A DNA stretch of 64,000 nucleotides from assembly GCA_010909165.1 (NCBI GenBank), contig MU008158.1, forward strand, positions 3,249,478 through 3,313,477. The letters run 5' to 3'. The notes beneath the pieces are model-generated. The model had not been told where the DNA came from. It did no database searches and worked only from the letters and a program-made list of their open reading frames with translations. Shown here piece by piece: positions 11,771-34,945 of this stretch. A program made the translations under genes and the position numbers. The first letter of the stretch is position 1; each line of letters starts with the position of its first letter. Origin of the DNA: Anthoceros angustus (lineage: Eukaryota; Plantae; Anthocerotophyta).

Positions 11771-12532
11771 TTTTAAGCTCTAAAACAACGAAGAGGACGA
11801 ATGTGCAGGCCACCACACTTCGTGATTCTGCCCTTTATGAAGGGAAGAATCACGAAAGCTCACGATCTCCAGATGACTACTGCAGCAAAGGTTCATGCAC
11901 ATGAACTTATAAATTGGTGTATTATTGATTACATTACAGCTGAAGTTAATTGACATACGATTGTTATGCGAAAACGAAAACAGTTCTGCATCGTGTGGTG
12001 TTAACAATAGGACAAAATAACGCTACGAAAAGTTGTGGCTCATATAGAGAAACATGTCTCGTTAATAGATGTTCCCAAGCGCAAATACTTATGGGTCAAG
12101 AAATTGTGTCATGCTAACACGTTCCCAAGCAACGTTTCACTGAAGCTGAATGCAGAGTAGGGGTATGAGTTGCAGGTCCTCTAAATCACCAACGAGGAGA
12201 AGGATGTAGACCACTACACCACATACTTGGTGAAGCCACATCCCCTGGGAGCCACATACCTTGGAAGCCACATACCTGGTACGTACCATGGTATTTGTCA
12301 CATGTACAAGGCCAGAATCAGGAAGCTCATGATATCGCAAATGTCTGGTGGAGCAATGCTTCCAACCTTTTGCATTATTGCGTTACACATGAAGTTATTT
12401 GACATATGACTAACATGCGGAAACGTCAACAGTTCTAGTTCTAGATCATGCGAGTTACAAGATAATATTTGTGGCTCACGAAAATATTTCCTCAGCCATG
12501 CCTGTGCCTACTTCGCGATATAGCAACTTAAT

Positions 12533-14161
12533 CTAGCCTGCAACTTCATAGTTATCAGTGAATGCTTCGTTCTCTACATCTGCACTCACGAACTCGCTGA
12601 TAAGAGAAAAATGAACAGCTTCTTCTTCGTCTTCGAGATAGGAATCATCATCTTCTTCTTCATTGGGTTGATCTTCTTCCTCATTGGGTTGATCTTCTTC
12701 TTCATTGGGCTCTTCGTCTTCGGCATTGGGTTGATCTTCTTCTTCATTGGGTTGATCTTCTGTTTCATTGGGTTGATCTTCTTCATTGGGTTGATCTTCT
12801 CCCTTATTGGGTTTATCTTCCTCATTGGGTTGATCTTCTTCTTCATTGGGTTGATCTTCTTCTTCATTGGGTTGATCTTCTTCATTGGGTTCCTCTTCTT
12901 CTTTAGGTTGTTGATCTTCTTCTTCGTTAGGTTCCTCTTCTTCTTCATTGGGTTCCTCTTCTTCTTCATTGGGTTCCTCTTCTGCTTCATTGGGTTGATC
13001 TTCTACTTCATTGGGTTCTTCTTCTGCTTCATTGGGTTCTTCTTCGGCTTCGTTGTGTTCTTCTTCTGCTTCACTGGGTTCTTCTTCTGCTTCATTGGGT
13101 TCTTCTTCTGCTTCATTGGGTTCTTCTTCTGCTTCATTGGGTTGATCTTCTGCTTCATTGGGTTGATCTTCTGCTGCTTCATCGGGTTGATCTTCTGCTG
13201 CTTCATCGGGTTGATCTTCTGCTGCTTCATCGGGTTGATCTTCTGCTGCTTCATCGGGTTGATCTTCTGCTGCATCGGGTTGATCTTCTGCTGCATTCGG
13301 TTGATCTTCTGCTTCATGAGCTATCGATTCCAATGGTGTAAGATCAACCATGTCAAGCCTAGGATCCCTAGGCAACCGCCTCTTGAAACACCCTGGCGGG
13401 CAGACGCAACGGAAAATAGTTTTGGCGAGATGAGCTGGCACTGCCTCGCAAATATGGTTGCAGCTCCAAATCCTGGGATCAACCACTGGAAGTTCGCAGG
13501 TTATCGGTCCCACTGGTGGAAGATCAACCACGTCAGCTGGAATAGGCAACGGCGAGTTGGCATATCTTGGACCCGGTGCAGACGCTATGGAAGAGACTGG
13601 CGGTACCGGTGGCGATGGCGACGGAGACTGTGAAAGGACCTCAGGTGATTGTGATGGCGGATGGACCGCAGTCGCTGGCGCTGGCCGTGGAGACTCTTTC
13701 GTGGGAATCTCCAATGCCGGATCTTGGTCAACTTTAAGCATCCGTGTCCCTAGCGCATGATGAAGCTTCAAACAAACCCCGATCAACACCGATTGCACGT
13801 CACCAGACTGCTGAGAACTCTGCCACTCCGAAGTGGGTGCAGCAATCGATGTAGTCAAGTTCCTCTCCTTCACGTTGTCCAGATCCACGTCCATGGAATC
13901 CGTTGCATGGAATCGACCATTCGAAATAACACGGCTGCTGCCGCTGCTGGTGCTCGTTGCTTGACTGATCTCTTGGTGTGCAGACCCCCTGGCTTCCGCA
14001 GTGCTTGGAGCAGGAAAATGTGCGTTACCTCCGAACCGCATCTTGACACTCACGGACCGGCGGCAATCTCCTGCGCAAGCCGCCATTCCTGCACACAAGA
14101 GGAGACTTCTCGAGCACCATAGCAGCGTCAGGAAGACGCAAAGAAAGCGTACGCGCAGCAT
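12533..14161 (-). CDS. Predicted secreted Ser/Pro-rich protein with Cys-rich segment and long acidic (E/D-Q-P-N) repeat tail; paralog of 29583-30380
   Basis: Uninterrupted ORF. ATG 14161 gives MLRVRFLCVFLTLLWCSRSLLLCAG (signal-peptide-like), an SP/PP-rich middle, CNHIC..CVCPPGC, then ~220 aa of EEDQPNE-type repeats. Single-exon model; expression unverified. Confidence 0.55.
   Translation of the reverse strand: MLRVRFLCVFLTLLWCSRSLLLCAGMAACAGDCRRSVSVKMRFGGNAHFPAPSTAEARGSAHQEISQATSTSSGSSRVISNGRFHATDSMDVDLDNVKERNLTTSIAAPTSEWQSSQQSGDVQSVLIGVCLKLHHALGTRMLKVDQDPALEIPTKESPRPAPATAVHPPSQSPEVLSQSPSPSPPVPPVSSIASAPGPRYANSPLPIPADVVDLPPVGPITCELPVVDPRIWSCNHICEAVPAHLAKTIFRCVCPPGCFKRRLPRDPRLDMVDLTPLESIAHEAEDQPNAAEDQPDAAEDQPDEAAEDQPDEAAEDQPDEAAEDQPDEAAEDQPNEAEDQPNEAEEEPNEAEEEPNEAEEEPSEAEEEHNEAEEEPNEAEEEPNEVEDQPNEAEEEPNEEEEEPNEEEEEPNEEEDQQPKEEEEPNEEDQPNEEEDQPNEEEDQPNEEDKPNKGEDQPNEEDQPNETEDQPNEEEDQPNAEDEEPNEEEDQPNEEEDQPNEEEDDDSYLEDEEEAVHFSLISEFVSADVENEAFTDNYEVAG
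12650..13320 (-). repeat. Coding minisatellite, 18/21/24-bp units (consensus gaagaagatcaacccaatgaa on minus strand), ~30 copies
   Basis: Plus strand shows repeated cattgggttgatcttcttctt, cattgggttcttcttctgctt and catcgggttgatcttctgctgctt; unit lengths are multiples of 3 and the frame stays open. Confidence 0.95.
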
Positions 14162-14611
14162 CTCTGCTCCCAATTCTCTCGGCTGATAGGACCACATGGG
14201 CAGAAGACGCTGAAACTCTCGCGGAGTCGGAGGAGGCAAGATGAGCGTGCCCCGCGGCGTGCAGTGACAAATGAGCATGGCGACGCCATACAACGACACA
14301 TGATTTCAAGCAAGACGTTCGGATCCATCGTTTCGCCGAGCAGGGCCGTTGAGGCACAGTCGTCTCGCCGAACGCGAGAGTTCTGGAGTGTTCTTTTTTC
14401 TGGTAGTGTCGCACGTTTTCAATGCGTCTCACAGTTTGAACTTGCTTGACAAGGAAATGTCCTTACTGGTAAGCAAAAACGAACTTCAAAATTTTGGATG
14501 ACATTCGTATGCCGTGATAAAACAAATTGTAATAAGCAGAGGGTGTAATGTACAACACAGACCCAAAGCTGCCGCGCGAGCTTTGGGAAGACTCCCGAGA
14601 AATACACCGAC

Positions 14612-15791
14612 TCAATCCACTTGTTGGGCAGCCACTGCCGCGCCCACCGGGCGCCATGCAGCCGAGGGCCTTCCAACCACGATTTCTTCCTCAGGGAATA
14701 GGGCCTTCATAATTCCGGGAGTCCTCACGATTCTGCGCCCAGTCATCAGGGGGTACACAACCTCCAGAAAGTAATATGTGTGTCCAGCAACCATGCCCTG
14801 CAAAATCCCCTTACGAAACTGCTTTTAGTGGTGAGACCGAAGAGGTGCAAGTTTGCATGCCACCTCGTAGAGAAAGAAGAAACACTGGCTCACCAGGAGA
14901 TCAACCCATGGTTTGCTGCCAACCATGATCGAGAAGCCCAAGAGAACCTCACAATGAGTCACGACAATGAGGCTGCAGCCAACACTGGGCTCATTGAACA
15001 TAGAATGCTGCTGATAGACTTAAGTCCTGACGGAACAGCATTGTGAAAGAAGGCACACTAACCCATGGAAGGTAAGGTGCTGTGAAACTGAAGAGACCAA
15101 GGAAACTCATTTGCACATGAGGATTGCACTTGTTCCATACGTACACCTGTCGAAGAAGGAACCAAAGCTTCAGACTCACTCGCATTTTCAGCAAGTATAC
15201 TGTAAACAAGCCAGGACCAAGACCTCAACTGCTGAAGAGCGACCACGTACCATCATAAATGTGAGGGAGTTGCTCGAGGACATAATTCTGGCAAAATGAG
15301 AAAACCATGGAAGTGCACATCCCCCGACCACCATGAAAGTCAACAAGGTGGCTCCGAAAAGAAGCATGAAGAAAAAGTCTGCTGTTCGCCCTCAAAAAGA
15401 GGTTTCCTCAAGAAGCTTGCAATATCGTGCAAGGAAGATCATGGGAAAAAGGTAGATCTGTTGCACAAGCGGACTACAATGAGGAGCTATGGGGAGAACA
15501 GCACAGCATCAGGTGACCTACTCCAGAAGTCTGGATCTCTGAGCAAACCACTTGGTATACAGGTCTATGCGAAAGAAAAACTAGGTGTAGAGGAGACAAA
15601 CAGACCAACGAACGTGACTGGTTACTTGAGATTCTGACAAGACTGCAATGCCCCAGGCCTTCCAAAATAGCGTGTCACACCAATACTTACCAAGCCCTCC
15701 AAAGTAGAAAACGTTTGTCACAAGTCTCCAAACTTCATATTGCTGCACAACAAGCGAGGGATTCAAGTATCATTGAAGAAAGGATATGACC
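14612..15791 (-). pseudogene. Derlin-2 pseudogene copy 1 (exons 2-6, no exon 1)
   Basis: Homologous to 30851-32051. In-frame TGA at 15770-15772, deletion at the start of exon 3 (~15445-15458), fused to WD40 sequence at 15788-15791. Confidence 0.88.
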
Positions 15792-17426
15792 CATGATCTG
15801 CCAACATGCATTCAAAAATCATAAAGCTGAAAATGGCGACTGATGTGATGCCATGGTACCCAACATCCATAGTGGTTGTTTTCATGATGAACAAATGCTT
15901 ACCTTATACTTCAAGCAGTTTGTCCACTGCGCTGATGCACTCCACCTACCATTTAGTGCTAGAAGGTTAGCCAACAGCTTCCTGGGGTTTCCAGCCTACA
16001 ACATATGGCACGTGGGGTTGCTTTAAAGGACACAAACCATGACCATCCGCACCTTTGGGATCAATCACTGCTGCAGTGCGACATGCACCTCCAGCAGCCA
16101 ACAGTCCATTGCAGGAGCTACTGAGAGCATAGAGGGGGTGACCACTGTAAGCACCAAAAACGGTTTGCACCAATCCTGCCCGTTCACTTACTCTTAAATC
16201 CCAAACAGTCAACTGCAAAAGTGAAAGGAAGAACGAAGGATATCGAACGACGTCAACAACTATGGAAGCACCAGCATTAATGTTGCAATGTGCATTCCAC
16301 TTTGGTGGCGGACAAACAAAGAAAACAAGATTCATGCGTACTGTATATACGACAGTGACGATCGCACCTGAGGACCCTCTGCCACACCCAACGTGGAGGA
16401 AAAGCCCGAGCCTAAAAGGCCACCCCGAAGAAACGTGAGTGCTGCTGGTTGCTGGAGGCTGATAACCAACAAGCAGATAGAAACTGATATCAGTTTGGAG
16501 GGCAAATGCAGAAGTAGCAAACTCGTACATTTTAACACCAGAAGCAGTAAGGTCACAGCTTACCAACTTATGTGCGCAGAGGGTGAACATGGATATCCTT
16601 GCCATAAACATCGATAGTCTTGTAGAAGCCCGTGCAGCAACAGCCTGAATTGAGGGCACAAAGTCAGCGCATAAAGCCTAATGCCTCAGAAACAAGAAGT
16701 GCACATGTGGACAAAGGCCTTACCAGCGTGGATTGGCCCTCAGCAAAGGCTAGGCCAGCCCAGCTGCCTTCTCCCACTCCAGCATCCTAAGGTACGACAG
16801 TGTAACCTGGAGCAAATGGAATTCGCAAATATCTGTTTGAGAAGGTGCAAAAGCTAGAAAACAAAAAGAACTTGTCCACCAGCAGAAGCAACCTTGAGTA
16901 GGGACATCGAGATGATAAACCATGAGGCACCCATAAGAGTCCACAGAGCCGAGCATAAGCCCTCCATCATCTGTGTCAGGACAAACAGTGAACATGGCGA
17001 TTAAAATCTTTGCAGGCAGGGCAGACCCAAGGGAACACAGCAAAAGAAGCAAAGCTTACAGGAACATCCCGTGAGTGCCACACTCTGTATTTCAGCACGG
17101 TGAGAATACTGATCAAGAGCCCACGCCTCCAGATTCTGTGACCAACATCAATTGGAACACATTAACCCAAACAAGAAAACCAACCGGGAAAGAGCATCCA
17201 TATATAGACTCTTTCGTGTCACACAGACGAGCACGCGCATAGCATACAAGAATCAGACATTTGAGGGACCAAGGAAACCTGTCACTGCAGCTGCCAGCAA
17301 GTCCTCCTTCCCTTCTGAACAGCAGCACTGGATAGAGGTGCCTGCAAAACTGGAAGTGTCCTGTCAGCAGTCCCATCAACTGCCCTGTAGAGAAGAGAAG
17401 GGAGAAGAGTCCTACCTTGAAGCCAT
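15788..17426 (-). pseudogene. Conserved plant WD40-like protein pseudogene fragment W1 (internal exons)
   Basis: Exons encode GGLMLGSVDSYGCLMVYHLD, YTVVP*DAGVGEGSWAGL, QLTVWDLR, GGACRTAAVIDP. Premature TAG at 16787-16789 and a 1-nt deletion in the GKEDLL exon (~17303-17313). Confidence 0.8.
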
Positions 17427-17904
17427 GAGCATCGACGGAGAGGAGGATGGGCAACAACGTTCACACCTTCGGTACCCGCCATGGCGCTGACGGCGGCTGC
17501 ACGCTTGCAAGATGGAGACCAGCTACTCGTAGCGCGATCCTCAGCACTGCGTTGCGGTGCCACCGCTTGAAAGCCTCGTCTGACCTGGGACTCTCAGGGT
17601 TCGTATCGGCTTTTAGGAAGGAAAGAGTTGCAGATTAGACGGCGTCTGATTTTGATTGCCCGGAGAGGAATGGGGATTGGACATGAGCTCTCGGCAGCTG
17701 CCACGTCTGATATAGGCATTATCATCTTCACCATTTGGGGACATAAATTCGGAAAAGGCTTGCAAAGACCTAGTGGAACCGTGAGACGGACAGTGTCAGA
17801 TTTTCCGGCTGCCACACGGAAAGAAATATCAAATGCCGCCACAGCGACAGCTGTACACGTGAGTGTGTTTTATATGCTCGTGAGGTGAGGAGCCAATTGG
17901 TGCT

Positions 17905-19014
17905 CTAGGAAGCATATCCTTGGCATCCTCCGGCAGGATGCTGAACACTTTCACCCACGAAGACGCTTCCAGACTCGCACCACCTGACAAGGACGTCCGA
18001 TTTTGCGTTCTGCCAACGGACAATGGAAGGAAGGCGTCAGGCATGAGCCATAAGCCATGCCAGTGTTTCAATCTCACCATGCCACCTTGAATCCTGGGTT
18101 CAGGAAGCTTACAGCGCAAGTTGTCGTCTCCAAGCTGAGCCACCGTGAGTCACCCGAAAACCAAACAACTGGCCCATTTTGCCTCCTACTGGATTCCATC
18201 GCCCACAAACCGTCTGCAAGTAAGTCACCGGGGCATCAGTGCATCTGATCTCTTCTGTCGGCTGACATGCAGAAAATTGAGGCTGAGGATCAATTACCTC
18301 GTAGTCAAGACCGTGAACATAGAGATAATTAGGATCAACTCCTGAGAACGAAAGACCCATAATCTGCCAACACGCATTCAACAATCATCGAGCTGAAAAT
18401 GGCGACTGATGTGATGCCATGGTACCAACATCCATAGTGGTTGTTTTCATCATGAACACAAGGTTACCTCATACTTCAAGCAGTTTGTCCACCGCGCTGA
18501 TGCACTCCACCTACCATATAGTGCTAGAAGGTTAGCCACCAGCTTCGTGGGGTTTCCAGCCAACAACGTATGGCACGTGGGGTTTGCTGTAAAGGACACA
18601 AACCATGACCATCCGCACCTTCGGGGATCAATCACTGCTGCAGTGCGACATGCACCTCCAGCAGCCAACAGTCCATTGCAGGAGCTACTGAGGGCATAGA
18701 GGGGTGTCCACTGTAAGCACCGACAACGGTTTGCACTAATCCTCCCTTTCCCTTGCTCTTAAGTCCCAAACAGTCAACTGCACAAGTGAAAGGAAGAACG
18801 AAGGATATCGAACGACGTCAACAACTATGGATGCACCAGCATTAATGTTGCAATGTGCATTCCACTTTGGTGGCGGACAAACAAAAGAACACAAGATTTA
18901 TGCATGCTGTATCTACGACAGTGATGATCGCACCTGAGGACCCTCTGCAACAGCCAATGTGGAAGAAAAGCCCGAGCCTAAAAGGCCACCCGAAGAAACG
19001 TGAGCGCTGCTGGT
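17905..19014 (-). pseudogene. WD40-like paralog W2, 3' exons only (about 90% identical to W1/W3)
   Basis: QLTVWDL, GGACRTAAVIDPRRWSASARWTNCLKYEVT, IMGLSFSGVDPNYLYVHGLDYE, QLFGFR(G)DSRWLSL (1-nt frameshift), NAKSDVLVRWCESGSVFVG...AS* with stop at 17905-17907. Broken at 19005-19014. Confidence 0.8.
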
Positions 19015-19680
19015 GCTCGTTGCTTGACAAGGAAATGTCCTTACTGGTAAGCAAAAACGAACTTCAAAATTTTGGATGACATTCGTATGCCGTGATAAAA
19101 CAAATTGTAATAAGCAGAGGGTGTAATGTACAACACAGACCCAAAGCTGCCGCGCGAGCTTTGGGAAGACTCCAGAAGTCTGGATCTCTGAGCAAACCAC
19201 TTGGTATACAGGTCTGTGAAAGAAGGCACACTAACCCATGGAAGTGCATCCCCGACCACCATGAAAGTCAACAAGGTGGCTCCGAAAAGAAGCATGAAGA
19301 AAAAGTCTGCTGTTAAGCCCTCAAAAGAGGTTTCCTCAAGAAGTGCACATGTGGACAAAGGCCTTACCAGCGTGGGGTTGGCCGTCAGCAAAGGCTAGGC
19401 CAGCCCAGCTGCCTTCTCCCACTCCAGCATCCTGGGGTTACGACAGTGTAACCTGGAGCAAATGGAATTCACAAATATCTGTTTGAGAAGGTGCGAAAGC
19501 TAGAAAACAAAAGGAACTTGTCCACCAGCAGAAGCAACCTTGAGTAGGGACATCGAGATGATTAACCATGAGGCACCCATAAGAGTCCACAGAGCCGAGC
19601 ATAAGCCCTCCATCATCTGTACCAGGACAAACAGTGAACATGGCGATTAAAATCTTTGCAGGCAGGGCAGACCCAAAGCT
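19005..19680 (-). other. Micro-mosaic of short segments copied from the secreted-protein gene, the Derlin pseudogene and a WD40 paralog
   Basis: Segments match 13943-13965, 14442-~14596, 15520-~15575, 15042-15071, 15305-15415, 16693-17030 and then 14558 onward, each joined through a 7-10 nt shared word. Confidence 0.9.
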
Positions 19681-19717
19681 GCCGCGCGAGCTTTGGGAAG
19701 ACTCCAGAAATACCGAC

Positions 19718-20883
19718 TCAATCCACTTGTTGGGCAGCCACTGCCGCGCCCACCGGGCGCCATGCAGCCGAGGGCCTTCCAACCACGATTTCTTCCTCAG
19801 GGAATAGGGCCTTCATAATTCCGGGAGTCCTCACGATTCTGCGCCCAGTCATCAGGGGTACACAACCTCCAGAAAGTAATATGTGTCCAGCAACCATGCC
19901 TGCAAAATCCCTTACGAAACTGCTTTTAGTGGTGAGACCGAAGAGGTGCAAGTTTGCATGCCACCTCGTAGAGAAAGAAGAAACACTGGCTCACCAGGAG
20001 ATCAACCCATGGTTTGCTGCCAACCATGATCGAGAAGCCCAAGAGAACCTCACAATGAGTCACGACAATGAGGCTGCAGCCAACACTGGCTCATTGAACA
20101 TAGAATGCTGCTGATAGACTTAAGTCCTGACGGAACAGCATTGTGAAAGAAGGCACACTAACCCATGGAAGGTAAGGTGCTGTGAAACTGAAGAGACCAA
20201 GGAAACTCATTTGCACATGAGGATTGCACTTGTTCCATACGTACACCTGTCGAAGAAGGAACCAAAGCTTCAGACTCACTCGCATTTTCAGCAAGTATAC
20301 TGTAAACAAGCCAGGACCAAGACCTCAACTGCTGAAGAGCGACCACGTACCATCATAAATGTGAGGGAGTTGCTCGAGGACATAATTCTGGCAAAATGAG
20401 AAAACCATGGAAGTGCATCCCCGACCACCATGAAAGTCAACAAGGTGGCTCCGAAAAGAAGCATGAAGAAAAAGTCTGCTGTTAAGCCCTCAAAAGAGGT
20501 TTCCTCAAGAAGCTTGCAATATCGTGCAAGGAAGATCATGGGAAAAGGTAGATCTGTTGCACAAGCGGACTACAATGAGGAGCTATGGGGAGAACAGCAC
20601 AGCATCAGGTGACCTACTCCAGAAGTCTGGATCTCTGAGCAAACCACTTGGTATACAGGTCTGTGAAAGAAAACTAGGTGTAGAGGAGACAAACAGACCA
20701 ACGAACGTGACTGGTTACTTGAGATTCTGACAAGACTGCAATGCCCCAGGCCTTCCAAAATAGCGTGTCACACCAATACTTACCAAGCCCTCCAAAGTAG
20801 AAAACGTTTGTCACAAGTCTCCAAACTTCATATTGCTGCACAACAAGCGAGGATTCAAGTATCATTGAAGAAAGGATATGACC
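19718..20883 (-). pseudogene. Derlin-2 pseudogene copy 2
   Basis: Near-identical to 14612-15791, with the same exon-3 deletion and the same WD40 fusion junction (gacc 20880-20883); differs mainly by 1-2 nt indels. Confidence 0.88.
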
Positions 20884-21115
20884 CATGATCTGCCAACATG
20901 CATTCAAAAATCATAAAGCTGAAAATGGCGACTGATGTGATGCCATGGTACCCAACATCCATAGTGGTTGTTTTCATGATGAACAAATGCTTACCTTATA
21001 CTTCAAGCAGTTTGTCCACCGCGCTGATGCACTCCACCTACCATTTAGTGCTAGAAGGTTAGCCAACAGCTTCCTGGGGTTTCCAGCCTACAACATATGG
21101 CACGTGGGGTTTTGC
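20880..21115 (-). pseudogene. Short WD40 W1-type fragment
   Basis: Matches 15788-~16020, then jumps to Derlin 14910 at ggtttgct (~21108-21115). Confidence 0.8.
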
Positions 21116-21975
21116 TGCCAACCATGATCGAGAAGCCCAAGAGAACCTCACAATGAGTCACGACAATGAGGCTGCAGCCAACACTGGGCTCATTGAACAT
21201 AGAATGCTGCTGATAGACTTAAGTCCTGACGGAACAGCATTGTGAAAGAAGGCACACTAACCCATGGAAGGTAAGGTGCTGTGAAACTGAAGAGACCAAG
21301 GAAACTCATTTGCACATGAGGATTGCACTTGTTCCATACGTACACCTGTCGAAGAAGGAACCAAAGCTTCAGACTCACTCGCATTTTCAGCAAGTATACT
21401 GTAAACAAGCCAGGACCAAGACCTCAACTGCTGAAGAGCGACCACGTACCATCATAAATGTGAGGAGTTGCTCGAGGACATAATTCTGGCAAAATGAGAA
21501 AACCATGGAAGTGCATCCCCGACCACCATGAAAGTCAACAAGGTGGCTCCGAAAAGAAGCATGAAGAAAAAGTCTGCTGTTCGCCTCAAAAGAGGTTTCC
21601 TCAAGAAGCTTGCAATATCGTGCAAGGAAGATCATGGGAAAAGGTAGATCTGTTGCACAAGCGGACTACAATGAGGAGCTATGGGGAGAACAGCACAGCA
21701 TCAGGTGACCTACTCCAGAAGTCTGGATCTCTGAGCAAACCACTTGGTATACAGGTCTGTCGAAAGAAAACTAGGTGTAGAGGAGACAAACAGACCAACG
21801 AACGTGACTGGTTACTTGAGATTCTGACAAGACTGCAATGCCCCAGGCCTTCCAAAATAGCGTGTCACACCAATACTTACCAAGCCCTCCAAAGTAGAAA
21901 ACGTTTGTCACAAGTCTCCAAACTTGCTGCACAACAAGCGAGGGATTCAAGTATCATTGAAGAAAGGATATGACC
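21110..21975 (-). pseudogene. Derlin-2 pseudogene copy 3 (exons 2-5)
   Basis: Near-identical to 14910-15791; same fusion junction gacc at 21972-21975. Confidence 0.88.
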
Positions 21976-23855
21976 CATGATCTGCCAACATGCATTCAAA
22001 AATCATAAAGCTGAAAATGGCGACTGATGTGATGCCATGGTACCCAACATCCATAGTGGTTGTTTTCATGATGAACAAATGCTTACCTTATACTTCAAGC
22101 AGTTTGTCCACCGCGCTGATGCACTCCACCTACCATTTAGTGCTAGAAGGTTAGCCAACAGCTTCCTGGGGTTTCCAGCCTACAACATATGGCACGTGGG
22201 GTTGCTTTAAAGGACACAAACCATGACCATCCGCACCTTTGGGATCAATCACTGCTGCAGTGCGACATGCACCTCCAGCAGCCAACAGTCCATTGCAGGA
22301 GCTACTGAGAGCATAGAGGGGTGACCACTGTAAGCACCAAAACGGTTTGCACCAATCCTGCCCGTTCACTTACTCTTAAATCCCAAACAGTCAACTGCAA
22401 AGTGAAAGGAAGAACGAAGGATATCGAACGACGTCAACAACTATGGAAGCACCAGCATTAATGTTGCAATGTGCATTCCACTTTGGTGGCGGACAAACAA
22501 AGAAAACAAGATTCATGCGTACTGTATATACGACAGTGACGATCGCACCTGAGGACCCTCTGCCACACCCAACGTGGAGGAAAAGCCCGAGCCTAAAAGG
22601 CCACCCCGAAGAAACGTGAGTGCTGCTGGTTGCTGGAGGCTGATAACCAACAAGCAGATAGAAACTGATATCAGTTTGGAGGGCAAATGCAGAAGTAGCA
22701 AACTCGTACATTTTAACACCAGAAGCAGTAAGGTCACAGCTTACCAACTTATGTGCGCAGAGGGTGAACATGGATATCCTTGCCATAAACATCGATAGTC
22801 TTCGCAAAGCCCCGTGCAGCAACAGCCTGAATTGAGGGCACAAAGTCAGCGCATAAAGCCTAATGCCTCAGAAACAAGAAGTGCACATGTGGACAAAGGC
22901 CTTACCAGCGTGGGGTTGGCCGTCAGCAAAGGCTAGGCCAGCCCAGCTGCCTTCTCCCACTCCAGCATCCTAAGGTACGACAGTGTAACCTGGAGCAAAT
23001 GGAATTCGCAAATATCTGTTTGAGAAGGTGCAAAAGCTAGAAAACAAAAAGAACTTGTCCACCAGCAGAAGCAACCTTGAGTAGGGACATCGAGATGATA
23101 AACCATGAGGCACCCATAAGAGTCCACAGAGCCGAGCATAAGCCCTCCATCATCTGTGTCAGGACAAACAGTGAACATGGCGATTAAAATCTTTGCAGGC
23201 AGGGCAGACCCAAGGGAACACAGCAAAAGAAGCAAAGCTTACAGGAACATCCGTGAGTGCCACACTCTGTATTTCAGCACGGTGAGAATACTGATCAAGA
23301 GCCCACGCCTCCAGATTCTGTGACCAACATCAATTGGAACACATTAACCCAAACAAGAAAACCAACCGGGAAGAGCATCCATATAGACTCTTTCGTGTCA
23401 CACAGACGAGCACGCGCATAGCATACAAGAATCAGACATTTGAGGGACCAAGGAAACCTGTCACTGCAGCTGCCAGCAAGTCCTCCTTCCCTTCTGAACA
23501 GCAGCACTGGATAGAGGTGCCTGCAAAACTGGAAGTGTCCTGTCAGCAGTCCCATCAACTGCCCTGTAGAGAAGAGAAGGGAGAAGAGTCCTACCTTGAA
23601 GCCATAAAGATGGATTTCGGAAGCGAAGTAAGCAGTGCACAAGCTGCCTTCCCTGTTAACCTGTGGACCACATGAATGTGAGCTGGCTACCCCGCCCACC
23701 TAAGTACCACCAAGTTGTAAAACGCAAGCCGCGAGGGGTAAGAAGAGGCTTACATGCACTGCCAGGCGACGCGAATAAGGGTATGCAGGGGAAGGATAAT
23801 CGAGGAGATGTGAAGGCAGCGTGGCCCGCTGCTGCGAACGCATGCGCAACGCCAT
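21972..23855 (-). pseudogene. WD40-like pseudogene W3: 5' exons with start codon, 3' exons replaced by Derlin
   Basis: ATG at 23855: MALRMRSQQRATLPSHLLDYPSPAYPYSRRLAVH|VNREGSLCTAYFASEIHLYGFK|... Carries the same TAG (22970-22972) and GKEDLL frameshift as W1. Confidence 0.8.
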
Positions 23856-24194
23856 TCCCGCCAACGCGGCCTCTCGATCTGGCGTCACTCGTAGCGTCGT
23901 CTCCGACAACCCATAGAAAAGCCAGGGGTTAAGTTGTAACGGCAGTCGGAGCACGTTTGAAGGTGGAGGGAAAGGCCGGCACGCTGCTGGGATTCTTGTG
24001 GTGCATCGTCCTTGGCACAGGAGTGAGGACTAGACTGGACCTAGCTGAGACCTTGCAGCTGCGGCTGTGGCGTGGGGTTGTTGCGCAGCTGCCATCGGCA
24101 CGCTTTGTGCCGCGAGTCATGGTGCACAGGGAGCAGCTGGTGGCGCAAGGCAGGTCTTGAGGTTTGGACGGTGGCAGGAGGCGGGCCGCTGTGC

Positions 24195-25123
24195 ATGCTT
24201 TTTGCATCAGACATGGGAATGTTGGAAAGGGCATGGATCCTCGTGCTTGTGCTGGCGGTAGCTGCGGTCGGGGCTCCCATGGTCCACGCCGGAAACCAGA
24301 ACGATGTGTACAGCCCTTGCAATGATACCAAAGTGCAGAAAAACGATGGCTTCACCTTTGGTCTCGCCTTCGGAAGCAACGGGAGTTTCTACGACAATGA
24401 TACTCGAGTCTCCCCTTGCGACTCCAGATTTCAGGAGTTGTCTGCCGGAGCTGTTATTGCTGTGTTTCGTCCCAAGGTGGACGAGATCACCTTGCTCACC
24501 ATAAACTACACCGATCTCACGCCGGTCTGTGCGGTTGTTGCTGTTTTCGAGGATGTGACCAGCTGCAACATACTGTCTTGTTCTGAGCCTTTTTGTTGTT
24601 CTTTGTTTGCAGGAAAACGGAAATGGATATGTTGTGGCCTTCTCAGGTGTAGAATACGCAGCTGCATCGTTTGTTAAGTTTGTGGCCAACAATTCTTACA
24701 TCGTCACCAGTCTGACGCTGGTAAGTAGCTTGTGGGGTTCCTTCCTGGACTGGACGGATGGAGTAGGCTTGCCTGCAATTCCGGTGGAGTCTCACAGCTT
24801 TCTTCATCCAGGTGTTGGACTTCAACAAGGGACGACTGGCAAACTACCTTTGGAAGGATGATAAGTGCGCCTCATGTCAATCAAACACTTCCTTCGTCTG
24901 CGTTAACGGGGAAGACTGTGCCATACCAACCGAAAGATGCATCGCTCGTGGTGGCAGTGTGGACTGCAGTGTGAGTATACAGGTGACGTTCTCTGGTGTT
25001 GATAAGCGGGATGCGGTGCTCAACTCCTGGTACCAGGTCAAGAATCTTCGTCAGTATTCCCTTTATTCCCTGTACGATAACCTGAAGAACTCCCTGACAA
25101 GCGATTTCAACCCATTTGGGTAG
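24195..25123 (+). CDS. Conserved plant secreted protein (Expp1-like)
   Basis: Exons 24195 (or 24213)-24524, 24613-24720, 24812-25123: signal peptide, NDVYSPCNDTKVQKNDGFTFGLAF, LSPCD-like motif, AVFRPKVDEITLLTIN, VLDFNKGRLANYLWK, FSGVDKRDAVLNSWYQVKNLRQYSLYSLY. Confidence 0.82.
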
Positions 25124-28395: not shown

Positions 28396-29582
28396 AGTTG
28401 TTTCGTTACCACCCCTTCCGAGTTTTGGCCATGCGATCACTGGGGGGTTAGCTGTCGCTATGTTCTAGCGTGGTTCACAGATGCGGATGGATCCATTTGT
28501 TGGGGATGCAGATCTTTCCATGGACGCCAGTCGCCGTCCACGGCTACTGCACTGCCAACTTTGCACAAATGCGAGATCTGCTCAAGAACTAGTGCTTGGT
28601 TAGAGGTGGAAATCGCGGTATGCACGTCAACTTCCAAGCTCTTGTATCATTATGTACATACAGTAGGAGGCCTTCACATAACGACAGTCGTGACCAGTTA
28701 CAGATGGTGTGGAATGATAGTGAGATACCTGTCTCACCAAACTGTCCCGCTAACGGCGTTTCATGTGCCTACTGTGTTACATAGCAGCTCAATCTAGCCT
28801 GCAGTTTGCTAGTTCCTTCTAAGCTCTAAAACACCGGAGAGGACGAATATGCAGGCCACCACACCACATGCTGCTGCCCTTTGTGAAGAGCAGATTCACG
28901 AAAGCTCACGATCTCCAAATGACTGCCGCAGCAAAGGTTCATGCACGTCAATTTCCAAACTGCTGTGTTATTACATTGCAGCTGAAGTCTGGTGTTAACA
29001 ATAAGACAAAATATCACTACACGACACGAAAACTTGTGGCTCATGAAAACATGTCCCGCTAACAGACGTTCCCAAGCACAAATACTCTTGGCTCACCAAA
29101 ACGTGTCCCGCTAACAGACGTTCCCAAGCAACGTTTCACTGAAGCCGAATGCAGAGCAGGGGTATGAGTTGCAGGTCCTCTAAATCACCGATGAGGACAG
29201 GTATCCAGTCCACCACGCCACAAATACCATGGCATTTGTCACATTTGAAGGGCCAGAATCTTGAAGCTCATGATCTCGCAAATGTCTGGTGGAGCAATGC
29301 TTTCAAACTCTTGTATTATTACGTTACACCTGAAGTTATTTGACATACGACTGTCATGAGGAACGTCAACAATTCTAGATCGCGTGGAGTTAGAAGATAA
29401 CATGTGTGGCTTACGAAAACATGTCCCGCTATCAGCCATGCCTGTGCCAACCTTCGCAACATAGCAGTTCCATCTAGCTTGCAACTTCATAGTTATCACA
29501 AAATCGCATCGTTCTCTGCGCTGAACAACTACCTAATAAGAGAAAAGAGAAGAGACTCTCCAAGCCAGACCGCATGCTTTCT

Positions 29583-30380
29583 TCACAAGTGAAGGACCAG
29601 AAGCAGGAAGCTCGCGATCGCGAAAATGGCGTTCCCACGCAACATGTCACTGAAGCCGAATTCGGAGCAGAGATATGAGTTGCAGGTCCCAAAGCTTCCG
29701 ATGCCCTCGTTGGACACTGGAGGGTTATAGGTTATCGGTCCCAATGGCGGAAGATCAACCACGTCAGGAATAGGCAACGGCGAGTTGGCATATCCTGGGC
29801 CCGGTGCAGACGCAATGGAAGGGCCTGGCGGTACCCCTGGCGATAGCGACGAAGACGGTGAGACGACCTCAGGTGCTTGTGATGGTGGATGGACCGCAGT
29901 CCTTCGCGCTTGCTGTGGAGACTCTTGCCTGGGAATCTCCAATCCCGCCGGATCTTGGTCGACTTCCAGCATCCGTGTCCCTGGCGCATGATGAAGCCTG
30001 ATCAATACAGATTGCACGTCACCAGACTGCTGAGAACTCTGCCACTCCGAAGTAGTTGCAGCAATCGATGTAGTAAAACTCCTCTCCTTCACGTTGTCCA
30101 GATCCATGTCCATGGAATCCTTTGCATGGAATCGACCATTCGAAATAACACGGCTGCTGCCGCTGCTGGTGCTTGTTGCTTGACTGATCTCTTGGTGTGC
30201 AGACCCCCTGGCTTCCGCAGTGCTTGCAGCAGAAAAATGTGCGTTACCTCCGAACCGCATCTTGGCACTCACGGATCCGCGACAATCTCCTGCGCAAGCC
30301 GCCATTCCTGCACACAAGAGGAGACTTCTCGAGCACCATAGCAGCGTCAGGAAGACGCAAAGAAATCGTACGCGCGGCAT
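29583..30380 (-). CDS. Predicted GPI-anchored Ser/Thr/Pro-rich (AGP-like) cell-surface protein, 265 aa
   Basis: ATG 30380 MPRVRFLCVFLTLLWCSRSLLLCAG (signal-like); SPSSSLSPGVPPGPSIASAPGPG; C-terminus ...SEFGFSDMLRGNAIFAIASFLLLVLHL* (hydrophobic tail with no cytosolic residues). No family recognised. Confidence 0.6.
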   Translation of the reverse strand: MPRVRFLCVFLTLLWCSRSLLLCAGMAACAGDCRGSVSAKMRFGGNAHFSAASTAEARGSAHQEISQATSTSSGSSRVISNGRFHAKDSMDMDLDNVKERSFTTSIAATTSEWQSSQQSGDVQSVLIRLHHAPGTRMLEVDQDPAGLEIPRQESPQQARRTAVHPPSQAPEVVSPSSSLSPGVPPGPSIASAPGPGYANSPLPIPDVVDLPPLGPITYNPPVSNEGIGSFGTCNSYLCSEFGFSDMLRGNAIFAIASFLLLVLHL

Positions 30381-30850
30381 CTCTGCTCCCAATTCTCTCG
30401 GCTTATAGGACCACATCAGCAGAAGATGCTGAAACTCTCGCGGAGTCGAAGGAGGCAAGATGAGCGTGCCCCGCGGCGTGCAGTGACTAATGAGCATGGC
30501 GACGCCATGCAACGATACATGATTTTAAGCAAAACGTGCTACTTCACGATCCATCGTTTCGCCGACTAGGGCAATTAAGCCACAGTCGTTTAGCCGCACG
30601 CGAATCGAGAGTCTTCTTCTATTTTTTTTTCACACAGTATGAAATTACAAGCCATTGCATCCCACAGTTTGAACTTGCTTGACAAGGAAATGTCCTTGCA
30701 GCTAAGCAAAAACAACGGCTCAACTTCGAAGTTTTAGGTGACATTCGCATGCCGTGTTTAATGAGCAGATGATGTAATGTACAACACAGACCCAAAGCTG
30801 CCGCGCGAGCTTCGACAGGACTCCGAACTTGGCCGGAGAAATACTCCGAC

Positions 30851-33140
30851 TCAATCCACTTGTTGGGCAGCCACTGCCGCGCCTACCGGGCGCCACGCAG
30901 CCGAGGGCCTTGCAACCACGATTTCTTCCTCAGGGAACAGGGCCTTGATAATTCCGGGAGTCCTCAAAATTCTCCGTCCAGTCATCAGGGGGTACACGTC
31001 CTCCAGAAAGTAATATGCGTGTCCAGCAACCATGCCCTGCAAAATCCCCTTACGAAACTGCATTTAGTGGTGAGACCGGAGAGAGGTGCAAGTTTGCATG
31101 CCACTTCGTAGAGAAAGAAGAAACACTGGCTCACCAGGAGATCAACCCATGGTTTGCTGCCAACCATGATCGAGAAGCCCAAGAGAACCTGCACGAAGCC
31201 CACACAATGAGTCACGACAATGAGGATTCAGCCAACACTGAGCTAATTGAACATGGAATGCTGCTGATAGACTTAAGTCCTGACGGCACAGCATTGTGAG
31301 AGAAGGCACACTAACCCATGGAAGGTAAGGTGCTGTGAAACTGAAGAGACCAAGGAAACTCATCTGGACATGAGGATTGCGCTTGCTCCATACGTACACC
31401 TGTCGAAGAAGCAACCAAAGCTTCAGACTCACTCACTCGCATTTTCGCAAGTATACTGTAAACAAGCCAGGACCAAGACCTCAACTGCTGAAGAGCAACC
31501 ACGTACCATCATAAATGTGAGGGAGTTGCTCAAGAACACAATTCTGGCAAAATGAGAAAACCATGGAAGTGCACATCCCCCAACCACCATGAAAGTCAAC
31601 AAGGTGGCTCCGAAGAGAAGCATGAAGAAGAAGTCTGCTGTTCGCCCTCGAAAAGAGGTTTCCTCAAGAAGCTTGCAATATCGTGCAAGGAAGAACATGT
31701 GAAAGAGGAAATCCAGGTCTGTAGCACAAGCGGATTACGATGAGGCGCTACGGGGAGAACAGCACAGCATCAGGGTACCTACTCCAGAGGTCTGGATCTC
31801 TGAGCAAACCACTCGGTATGCGGGTATATGCCAAAGAAAAACTAGGTATAGAGGAGACAAACAGACCAACGAACGTGACTGGTTACCAGAGATTCTGACA
31901 AGACTGCAATGCCCCAGGCCTTCCAAAATAGCGTGTCACACCGATACTTACCAAGCCCTCCAAAGTAGAAAAAGTTTGTCACAAGTCTCCAAACTTCATA
32001 TTGCTTCACAACAAGCGTGGGATTCAAGTATAATTGAAGAAAGGAAATGACCTGCAACACGCTGCAGATTAGTAAACAATTAAGCAGAAGGGAGGCCATG
32101 CAGCATATTTCAACATCCATCTTAGGTATGAACTGAAGTAGAGTGAGGAAAACCACCACACACGGAACAAAACTAGAAACCCATGCTGTCTGAGGGGGAA
32201 TCTGTCAAGAGGCATCTGCTGCAATTCAGCGCAGTTATGAGCGAGCTGCGAGCCACTAGCCATGAGGTTCCTGGTGGCCACCGTGTTGCTAAGCTTACGT
32301 CCATCCTACGCTCAGTTTGTGCTTTCTGTTGTTCACTTAGAGAGAGTGACTATGAATTCTTTGAGAGAGAAGTTGCTCATAGAGGAGATAAGCATGCAGC
32401 AAACTTCCGCTAAGGAAGGAGGTTTACACGCTCGGACCTACAAAGCTCAGAAAAAAGGGTCTAAGCCTACTGATGGTAGTGCCGCTCGTGATGCAGCTCT
32501 CACACCCTGCGCAGAAGACTGCGACGGGCAAACAATGTGACGCGACAGCAGCCATTAGATACTTTTTGGCAGTGGGCACCTGAAAATTGATGCCCACTCT
32601 GGCTTTGCCTAGATGGCAACACTAGCAGTGGAGGTCCACTGGTCCCATCTACCAGCGGAGCTCCTTTGATTCTAGCCCGAGCCACCAGCTTGCACCACAA
32701 GGGAAAAAATAATCGAAGACCTCATCAGCTAGAGAAAAAAAAACATTTGGCAACGCTGGCGCAACAATAGGCTAACAATTGGGAGAAGTTTCTAGCGCCC
32801 CAGCCCGACTCCGAACCGACACATGCAATACAGAAACATCAGAACCAGACAGTCCTCAGCAACTCCCCACCTATGATGCCAAAGCCAAATCCATCCAAGC
32901 AAGGGAGCCGAAACCAGTGTCACTATCAACAAACGAGGAGACCTGCAAAGCAGAACCGCCGCGTTGCTCTGTTCTACTCCACGATCGCACAGCCCGTGAA
33001 TTGATGCAAACACACGTGTCTGAAGGGCAAGGGGAACCTACCTCAAGAGCACATCCTGCCGATGTTAGCACAGACAACGTCAAGTAGGAGCGAGTGATGA
33101 TGGGCATCTGCTTGTACCAATCCTCCACCATCTGCGCCAT
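30851..33140 (-). CDS. DER2: Derlin-2 (ERAD rhomboid-like pseudoprotease), intact, 244 aa
   Basis: Exons 33140-33042, 32051-31952, 31718-31507, 31399-31316, 31188-31135, 31036-30851, all GT-AG and in frame: [19 protein letters not shown]...[10 protein letters not shown]...[12 protein letters not shown]...VYVWSKRNP...[11 protein letters not shown]. Confidence 0.96.
32183..32420 (+). mobile_element. Ty1/copia gag (UBN2-like) fragment inside Derlin-2 intron 1
   Basis: [24 protein letters not shown], then after a frameshift [19 protein letters not shown]...[14 protein letters not shown], matching the copia gag UBN2 pattern; no LTRs seen. Confidence 0.6.
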
Positions 33141-33892: not shown

Positions 33893-34111
33893 AGACGAAG
33901 AAGAAGAATTTTATTTAAGTCCACTAAAGATGGATTTCCGTCATGGGACTTGGTACTTAACAACTTGTACCATGGTGTGCCTAAGCTACTTGCACTAAGG
34001 CCATCCACTCCCTTTAGGCACCCCATCTAAGTACCGATCTAAGCTCATGATGCTTAATCACGACGTTCTTATAAATGTGTGTCCATTTGGCCTAAGCCAT
34101 TTGGACACACA
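33893..34111 (-). repeat. Dispersed ~210-bp repeat, copy 1 (possible SINE/LINE 3' end with (TTC)n tail)
   Basis: Similar to 34668-34945; minus strand ends aaataaaattcttcttcttc; other end carries an atgtgtgtcc...ggacacacat hairpin. Confidence 0.55.
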
Positions 34112-34667
34112 TTCCAAATGAGTAGGTTTCAACAGGCCCACGAAGTTCCGCTGCTCGTTGTGCTCGTCGACCTCAAAGATAGAAATTGGCTGTGGCTTGT
34201 AGTCACTCAGCTCTGCATGGTTATCAACCAACTGAACAATCTCAAGCCGACTTCAGGTATCACCCATGTAAAGAAAAGAAAAGATTTAAATAGAACAATT
34301 TATGCCTGAGGGTGGTGGCAAGAAAGTAGACTAAAACCATATCCATTTTTGGTGTAGGATGGCAGCTTTGTTTTAGGTGTTAGGTACAAAAAAATACGTT
34401 AAAATTTACTTGACCTTGATATCTACTATACTATCAAATATGAATAAAATTATACCCAAACATATGATGAGAAGCAAAGAAAAAATCAAAACTGTTAGGT
34501 GTTAGGTGTTGTGCATGATAGATGTGCACCCCATAGAAAAACAAAAATTATTTTGCTCACTCCACGATGGGGGTGTGTGTGTGTGTGTGGGGCATAATAT
34601 TTACTTATGCAAGCTTTGATAAACTTGTGAAAATCCTTTTGCGTGATACGAGCTAGAGAGCCATGAA

Positions 34668-34945
34668 GAAGAAGAAGAATTTTATTTAAGTCCACTAAGG
34701 ACGGATTTCCGTCATGGGACTTGGTACTTAACAACTTGTACCATGGTTGCCTAAGCTACTTGCACCAAGGGCATCCATTCCCTTTAGGCACCCTATCTAA
34801 GTACCGATCCATGGTTGCCTAAGCTACTTGCACCAAGGGCATCCATTCCCTTTAGGCACCCTATCTAAGTACCCATCCAAGCTCAGGATGCTTAATCACG
34901 GCGTTCTTATAAATGTGTGTCCATTTGGCCTAGGCCGTTTGGCCA
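34668..34945 (-). repeat. Dispersed repeat copy 2 with internal ~69-bp tandem duplication
   Basis: Same sequence as 33893-34100; catggttgcctaagctacttgcaccaagggcatccattccctttaggcaccctatctaagtacc is present twice (34742, 34810). Confidence 0.65.

Follow-up and report, generated by a model that had tools for sequence, protein, structure and literature searches.

Clustered breakpoints, inserts templated from nearby sequence, and microhomology at the joins are the accepted signature of MMBIR/FoSTeS (chromoanasynthesis) and of the pathways that generate filler DNA. In MMBIR/FoSTeS, the microhomology is typically short and variable in length and inverted segments are common, whereas the inserts produced by plant filler DNA synthesis and by Pol theta-mediated joining are usually quite short, are drawn from the immediate flanks, and often occur in both orientations. 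A third process with comparable products is the assembly of noisy long reads (in particular, by early wtdbg-type assemblers from Nanopore R9-era data polished with Pilon), which leaves indel-only, deletion-biased differences in homopolymer and CpG contexts, extra copies that adjoin the true locus, jumps that are local and confined to one strand, head-to-tail duplicates of about one graph vertex, and assemblies that exceed the k-mer estimate of genome size.

The locus considered here lies in a window of 64,000 nt (the whole stretch of DNA analyzed; contig MU008158.1, positions 3,249,478 to 3,313,477, of Anthoceros angustus assembly GCA_010909165.1) and resembles each of these systems in part. 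As in MMBIR/FoSTeS, there are several clustered breakpoints, short inserts templated nearby, and microhomology at each join, but the shared words are longer and less variable, and the mosaic is known from an assembled sequence with error signatures around it. As in plant filler DNA and Pol theta-mediated joining, a patchwork insert (319 nt) takes the place of a missing stretch (239 nt) and has nearby templates and homology at its joins, but it comprises five consecutive pieces of 24 to 158 nt, drawn from up to 5 kb away and all on one strand. The likeness to long-read assembly errors extends to all of the features listed above; the differences are that shared words of 9 to 10 nt match none of the documented assembly parameters considered and that the block, beyond any rereading of its neighbor, includes DNA that has genuinely diverged. 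On balance, we consider that the mosaic and the extra "copies" that accompany it are probably products of noisy long-read assembly or consensus calling and not chromosome structure (rough probability, 0.7).

The donor of all pieces is a clean reference unit, copy 1 (13498 to 17426, strand -), recognized by self-BLAST of the window and by Pfam DER1 matches. It contains the 3' portion of a secreted-protein gene that is lineage specific (open reading frame [ORF] at 12533 to 14299), a DER1/Derlin gene (exon ORFs at about 14615 to 15766), and a gene at about 15967 to 17426 that the sequence-only reading had labeled WD40. The Derlin label is borne out by Pfam DER1 matches on three exon ORFs, but neither Pfam nor a PDB sequence search of the ORF pieces bears out the WD40 label; in these searches, exon ORFs were queried one by one and not as a joined-exon protein. 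A spacer of 927 nt with no assigned strand (17427 to 18353), which has no match elsewhere in the window by sensitive BLAST and no Pfam domain, separates copy 1 from the mosaic. Farther along, paralog block B (28817 to 32052, strand -) carries the secreted-protein gene and Derlin at 82 to 90% identity to 11771 to 15791; as an older, true paralog, it served both as an outgroup and as a benchmark of real divergence. Copy 1 and block B are both clean, with only 2 gaps of at most 2 nt between them across 2,268 nt.

Word searches with the 230-residue "WD40" ORF and with a junction-spanning ORF gave no match, and a large HMMER search with the secreted protein returned no relatives; a word search with a neighboring Expp1-like gene returned only distant kin (at most 63% identity), and the searches with these last two genes recovered no close kin in protein sets derived from metagenome contigs. 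Exact look-ups of 20 ORFs from the window, 7 of which span junctions, also gave no match and are uninformative on read support: in the first set, two long control ORFs lacked an ATG start and were poor controls, and a set restricted to ATG starts was equally blank.

Self-BLAST of the window resolves the block from 18354 to 23605 into a same-strand patchwork of pieces from copy 1, every one of which was recovered (all on strand +), and thereby confirms the chain of uninverted pieces described in the sequence-only reading. The block opens with a diverged piece (18354 to 19017) that matches 15788 to 16453 at 92.8%, and a second diverged piece (19337 to 19676) matches 22875 to 23213 at 97.4% and 16693 to 17030 at 96.5%. 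These two pieces are colinear parts of one genuinely diverged paralog fragment, so that the core of the mosaic reduces to a filler of 319 nt (19018 to 19336) in place of the equivalent of 16454 to 16692 (239 nt). Within and around this filler lie a 24-nt piece (19005 to 19028) identical to 13942 to 13965 in the secreted-protein gene; a piece at 19020 to 19177, of which 19020 to 19173 is identical to 14442 to 14595 and the end follows the noisy state of 19668 to 19709; a 56-nt piece (19169 to 19224) identical to the noisy copy at 20616 to 20671 and 94.8% identical to 15520 to 15577; a 30-nt piece (19215 to 19244) identical to 15042 to 15071; and a 108-nt piece (19236 to 19343) identical to the noisy copy at 20405 to 20512 (equivalent to 15305 to 15415) and lying inside a DER1 exon. 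When extended, the last of these matches (19233 to 19343 with 20402 to 20512) has 99.1% identity, its single mismatch falling in the overlap. The 30-nt piece straddles the border of a Derlin exon and an intron, with 21 nt in the intron, and thus was not derived from cDNA.

Downstream of the second diverged piece are two longer stretches, noisy copy 2 (19668 to 21111, matching 14558 to 16019 at 98.4%) and noisy copy 3 (21111 to 23605, matching 14912 to 17426 at 98.8%). The first 1.09 kb of copy 3 repeats 20013 to 21111 head to tail without a single substitution, and the two copies together are best described as one second copy of 14558 to 17426 with an internal head-to-tail duplicate of 1.1 kb. 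The local tandem array proposed from the initial inspection of the sequence is only partly right as a description, since the extra copies are noisy renderings of a single unit rather than array members that have diverged.

The differences between these copies have the spectrum of sequencing error. Copy 2 departs from copy 1 by 15 gap events (14 small deletions and 1 insertion over 1.46 kb) and 3 substitutions, at most 1 of which is clean; copy 3 departs from copy 1 by 19 gap events (16 small deletions and 3 insertions) and 5 substitutions; and copies 2 and 3 differ from one another by 7 gap events and no substitutions. Bases are missing from the extra copies in 30 of the 34 gaps relative to copy 1, mostly as deletions of 1 to 2 nt in homopolymer and CpG contexts, such that the block as a whole differs from the adjacent unit by about 1% small, deletion-biased indels and almost no substitutions. 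True divergence, as measured between A and B, has a different spectrum, with 0.07 to 0.11 indels per substitution and a transition/transversion ratio of 1.3; of its 13 gaps, only 2 are 2 nt or shorter. At all 10 informative indels, outgroup B agrees with copy 1 and at none with copy 2, and a Derlin exon peptide that copy 1 and B have in common is altered or frameshifted in the noisy copies (VVGGCALPW versus VVGDALPW). The diverged pieces combine both kinds of change: 18354 to 19017 contains 6.2% substitutions, with transitions and transversions about equally frequent, and is as distant from A as is B, yet it retains eight 1-nt indels of the homopolymer type, and 19337 to 19676 contains 8 to 10 substitutions (2.9%) and 1 or 2 indels. 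Sequence that short reads should place uniquely thus remained unpolished.

The seven junctions at shared words noted in the sequence-only reading were all found, along with one loose join, but two of the words attain their full length only against the noisy copy. Exact shared words at J1 to J7 measure 9, 9, 9, 10, 9, 7, and 9 nt. Those at J1 (GCTGCTGGT, 9 to 10 nt against the clean copy), J2 (TTGCTTGAC, 9 nt), J5 (CCATGGAAG, 9 nt), and J7 (CAGACCCAA, 9 nt) are present in the clean unit, and J6 (CAAGAAG, 7 nt) falls in the middle of a DER1 exon. The 9-nt word at J3 (ACTCCAGAA) is absent from copy 1, which reads ACTCCCGAGAA, and the 10-nt word at J4 (TGTGAAAGAA) occurs only in the noisy state, copy 1 and B reading TATGCGAAAGAA and TATGCCAAAGAA. 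Against clean copy 1, the J3 word shrinks to 5 nt and the J4 word to no more than 7 nt, giving clean-state lengths for J1 to J7 of 9 to 10, 9, 5, 1 to 7, 9, 7, and 9 nt; the uniform length therefore appears only in "read space." J8, at 21111, is a loose join at GGTT(T)GCT across a difference in the length of a T run. Based on 2 million random donor pairs drawn from the unit at 13498 to 17426, the probability that a random join has a shared word of at least 7 nt is 6e-4, and that of at least 9 nt is about 5e-5, per junction. The seven joins lie within about 670 nt and have donors within 5 kb, and all eight jumps are on the same strand, whereas shared 9-mers inside the donor unit are inverted in 38 cases and direct in 32. 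Many other shared words of 9 to 12 nt along the path of the mosaic were passed without a jump, indicating a local cluster of jumps and not a free walk.

The position of the mosaic within a 5-kb block bearing uncorrected long-read errors makes an artefact its most likely origin, and this reading is favored by the deletion-biased noise, the support of the outgroup, the two junction words confined to the noisy state, and the local, same-strand donors. In the account that we propose, reads from one real locus and from a diverged paralog fragment would have been laid out more than once, and the consensus path would have hopped across the read pile over about 670 nt at shared words of about 9 to 10 nt. 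Hopping of this kind would confine the jumps to one strand and the donors to a few kilobases, and it would leave a near-constant minimal overlap and pieces bearing the errors of the reads. Short-read polishing would then have mended the true locus alone, where short reads align best. A second source locus would still be needed, given the real-looking substitutions of the diverged pieces (6.2% and 2.9%), so that some genuine paralogous DNA does exist, at this locus or another.

Published accounts of the assembly fit this scheme in several respects. The A. angustus genome was assembled from corrected Nanopore reads with wtdbg-1.2.8 and polished by Pilon with Illumina reads that had been prefiltered to a k-mer depth of 60 to 165, yielding 119 Mb compared to a k-mer estimate of 106.8 Mb. 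The graphs built by wtdbg ignore base sequence and merge similar bins of 256 bp, with four bins to a vertex, and the tandem duplicate of about 1.1 kb is close in size to one vertex (4 × 256 bp), as might be left by an unmerged vertex of about 1 kb between successive consensus units. Should the artefact be borne out, chimeric genes, mosaics of the template-switch kind, and tandem "duplicates" anywhere in this assembly are not to be taken as biology until supported by reads, and gene-family expansions and gene counts derived from the A. angustus assembly may be inflated. The features used here (the indel-to-substitution spectrum, an older paralog as outgroup, and junction words confined to the error state) also offer a triage that requires no reads.

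Of the two options raised in the sequence-only reading, the artefact is thus the better supported, and a dense, recent rearrangement retains a lower probability, as judged from the assembled sequence and not from reads. Such a rearrangement, to which we assign a distinctly minor share, would be a very recent episode of MMBIR/FoSTeS-type serial template switching, or of the synthesis of plant filler DNA during repair of a double-strand break. A polymerase, primed again and again at short homologies no more than about 5 kb apart, would have used the 319-nt patchwork to close a break in the paralog fragment. A later step would have recopied 2.9 kb of the neighboring unit, with the noise arising because repeats are hard to polish; context-driven, systematic basecalling errors could also give a real mosaic the error states of copy 2. 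The mosaic does display clustered breakpoints, short inserts templated nearby, and microhomology at each junction, and its clean-state word lengths look more biological than do the uniform ones. In addition, the interruption of an otherwise colinear paralog by the filler resembles what filler DNA leaves where a break has been mended, and the jumps are bunched although many other shared words were on offer. Were there truly two or three units, however, one would expect copy 1 to be polished no better than the rest, whereas it is clean; polishing should also have reached the unique diverged piece but did not; no jump is inverted despite equal opportunity; and the words, at 9 to 10 nt, are long and uniform for such pathways. 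Were the event real, it would provide a clean natural case of multistep template switching in a bryophyte. That the mosaic is physical and records a recent burst of same-strand switching at homologies of about 9 nt, in a hornwort lineage where microhomology-primed copying is unusually active and shapes gene clusters, strikes us as improbable.

Far less probable is that a real tandem array of at least 5 units once stood here and was trimmed to what is left by seven independent microhomology-mediated deletions. The order of the pieces is always forward modulo the 3.9-kb unit, such that each jump can be read as a forward deletion, and all joins are same-strand, but seven independent deletions at words of 7 to 10 nt would have to be crowded into 670 nt. 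Moreover, pieces that are 100% identical to extant copies, including their indel states, leave too little time for seven deletions, and the differences between copies are of the error type and not those of divergence. Least credible is a processed (spliced) retrocopy or a bundle of fragments captured by a Pack-MULE-, Helitron-, or CACTA-type transposon, an origin suggested by fragments from three genes but contradicted by donors that lie right beside the block and match it at about 100% identity, by piece ends that lie off the splice sites (J6 falls within an exon, and the 30-nt piece crosses an exon-intron border), and by the lack of terminal inverted repeats around the block (inverted repeats within 17000 to 24200 do not exceed 16 nt) and of a transposase domain in the spacer.

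Returning to the artefact and to the word length at its joins, the genome paper and its supplements do not give program settings, and the parameters considered do not account for words of 9 to 10 nt. The published wtdbg-cns command has a k of 15, which would require words of at least 14 nt and not 9, and NextDenovo employs 3-mers and 8-mers for scoring only; neither matches the words observed. Homopolymer-compressed k-mers were set aside, as the compressed word lengths are nonuniform (6 to 9, by hand count). The word at J6, at only 7 nt, is a point against the artefact, as are the many other shared words of 9 to 12 nt that the path passes without a jump. The near-constant overlap of 9 nt had itself been called suspicious in the sequence-only reading.

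Window self-BLAST resolves the block at 18354-23605 entirely, and on the same strand, into pieces of the adjacent unit 13498-17426 (minus strand; hereafter copy 1), which carries the 3' part of a secreted-protein gene, a DER1/Derlin gene (minus strand, with Pfam DER1 matches on three exon ORFs) and the gene at ~15967-17426 labelled "WD40." In unit coordinates, the pieces follow one another as 15788-16453, 13942-13965, 14442-14595, 15520-15577, 15042-15071, 15305-15415, 16693-17030, 14558-16019, and 14912-17426. Together with exact extension of each donor, this confirms the mosaic of same-strand microhomology joins described in the sequence-only reading; the joins of its chain through three genes likewise stand, but the anatomy is simpler, comprising a diverged paralog, a filler, and a further copy. 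A single diverged paralog of the "WD40" region accounts for two colinear stretches, 18354-19017 with 6.2% substitutions relative to the unit (transitions roughly equaling transversions) and 19337-19676 with 2.9% (transitions in the majority). Where the equivalent of 16454-16692 would lie between them, there is instead a filler of 319 nt composed of four short pieces from the secreted-protein gene and Derlin. Beyond 19676 lies one further copy of 14558-17426, within which 20013-21111 is duplicated head to tail as 21111-22203 (1,099 and 1,093 nt), giving two extra copies at 19668-21111 and 21111-23605. A 927-nt spacer (17427-18353) separates the clean unit from the mosaic; it has no match elsewhere in the window and no domain, and may be part of the diverged paralog's true locus.

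As judged from the sequence, the kind of difference between copies is the decisive internal result. Copy 1 differs from 19668-21111 by 15 gap events and 3 substitutions and from 21111-23605 by 19 and 5, and the two extra copies differ from each other by 7 gap events and no substitutions. Nearly all gaps span 1-2 nt, fall at homopolymers or CpG-containing words, and reflect bases absent from the extra copies; the "substitutions" mostly adjoin gaps. As a benchmark for real divergence, the older paralog at 28817-32052 (block B, minus strand) shows 7.9-14.9% substitutions against the unit, with 0.07-0.11 indel events per substitution and a transition/transversion ratio of 1.3; of 13 gaps in a 2.3-kb comparison, only 2 are ≤2 nt. 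With B as an outgroup, all 10 informative indels favour copy 1, and the DER1-exon motif VVGGCALPW common to copy 1 and B reads VVGDALPW or is frameshifted in the extra copies. These error-type differences and the outgroup identify the extra copies as renderings of copy 1's own sequence, full of errors and biased toward deletions in the way typical of Nanopore consensus left uncorrected. Such noise also affects the diverged piece at 18354-19017, whose 664 nt hold eight 1-nt indels of homopolymer type; this piece lies as far from the unit as B does, and B is clean. Short-read polishing therefore missed the whole of 18354-23605 but not its neighbours.

The best explanation, to which we assign a probability of roughly 0.7, is an assembly or consensus artefact over one real unit and a real diverged fragment. 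The sequence-only reading had left a replication-based rearrangement and a long-read artefact side by side; the error-type differences, B, and the noise-dependent joins J3 and J4 favour the latter. Further pointers to an artefact are that none of the eight jumps is inverted, even though shared 9-mers within the unit number 38 inverted and 32 direct, and that every donor lies within ~5 kb. The genome was assembled with wtdbg-1.2.8 from corrected PromethION reads and polished by Pilon with Illumina reads prefiltered to a k-mer depth of 60-165, reaching a final size of 119 Mb against a k-mer estimate of 106.8 Mb (A. angustus genome paper). wtdbg builds its graph without regard to base sequence, merging similar bins, and the 1.1-kb head-to-tail duplicate is close in size to one vertex of that graph (4 x 256 bp). 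If the present sequence went through this depth filter, true triplication would have cost the unit all of its short reads, and copy 1 could not then be clean.

Exact extension of each donor across the joins (J1 to J8) gives shared words of 9-10 nt at J1, 9 nt at J2, J3, J5, and J7, 10 nt at J4, and 7 nt at J6; J8 is loose. Among random donor pairs within the unit, a word of at least 9 nt has a probability of 5e-5 per junction, so the words must stem from the process, whatever it was, that created the joins. The clean unit has only 28 maximal same-strand words of ≥9 nt, and those at J1, J2, J5, and J7 belong to this set. At J3, the clean state of the left donor is ACTCCCGAGAA (of the same length in B), and the word ACTCCAGAA exists only in the copy lacking CG; at J4, copy 1 has TATGCGAAAGAA and B TATGCCAAAGAA, and the word TGTGAAAGAA occurs only in 20616-20671 and the mosaic. 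Measured against clean sequence, the J3 word drops to 5 nt and that of J4 to ≤7 nt. The striking uniformity of word length (9, 9, 9, 10, 9) exists only in read space, as a join made in silico predicts. The argument stops short of proof, since basecalling errors driven by context at methylated CpG might arise again in a genuine mosaic, and shorter words could have served a real join.

The main rival, such a real join in the form of a template-switch or filler-DNA event that was merely left unpolished, we consider unlikely overall, although several observations speak against an artefact. The diverged pieces must derive from some real DNA, and the J6 word is only 7 nt long. Neither the one published wtdbg-cns setting found (k = 15) nor the 3-mers and 8-mers of NextDenovo, used for scoring only, explains words of 9-10 nt. 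The path also skips many other shared words, making the jumps a tight local cluster, as from a single repair event. Neither a close relative nor a second copy of the locus emerged from exact look-ups, word searches, or a large profile-free search. Other origins are rejected: a longer array trimmed by serial deletions would require seven of them within 670 nt, in copies that remain identical; splicing or retrocopying does not fit pieces that end in mid-exon or straddle an exon-intron border; and transposon capture fails on the lack of termini and domains.

Separately, the secreted-protein and Derlin pair was duplicated as a segment in an older, genuine event (11771-15791 and 28817-32052; 82-90% identity, substitution dominated). 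The detectable match between these two segments ends at 15791, ~20 nt before the true divergence point; the diverged fragment at 18354 begins at the equivalent of 15788. Clean copy 1 has an in-frame TGA in a DER1 exon (15392-15394, minus strand) where B has CGA, a CpG transition; Derlin-A may be a pseudogene and Derlin-B (~30.8-32.0 kb) intact, or the TGA may be a polishing error. The lineage-specific secreted-protein ORF (12533-14299, minus strand, 588 codons) has no relatives found among 1.84 billion representative proteins. Its C terminus is an acidic heptad repeat (EEEPNEA/EDQPNEE) encoded by a 21-nt tandem array at 12650-13317 (31.7 copies, 86% matches), most of which is missing from the B paralog (29583-30512).

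The window, with a G+C content of ~49% (published value for A. angustus, 49.6% [A. angustus genome paper]), is plant DNA with introns. Protein searches took exons singly, by reference. Directly after the duplicated block comes an Expp1-like plant gene (24072-25123, plus strand; PF28132 kin, its best relatives being angiosperm proteins 52-63% identical), then FEN1 from 25557 (XPG_N domain); the window also holds a 3'-5' exonuclease gene and a UPF0261 gene. Self-BLAST reveals a further small nest of direct repeats at 33894-34942 (146, 135, and 71 nt; 92-99% identical).
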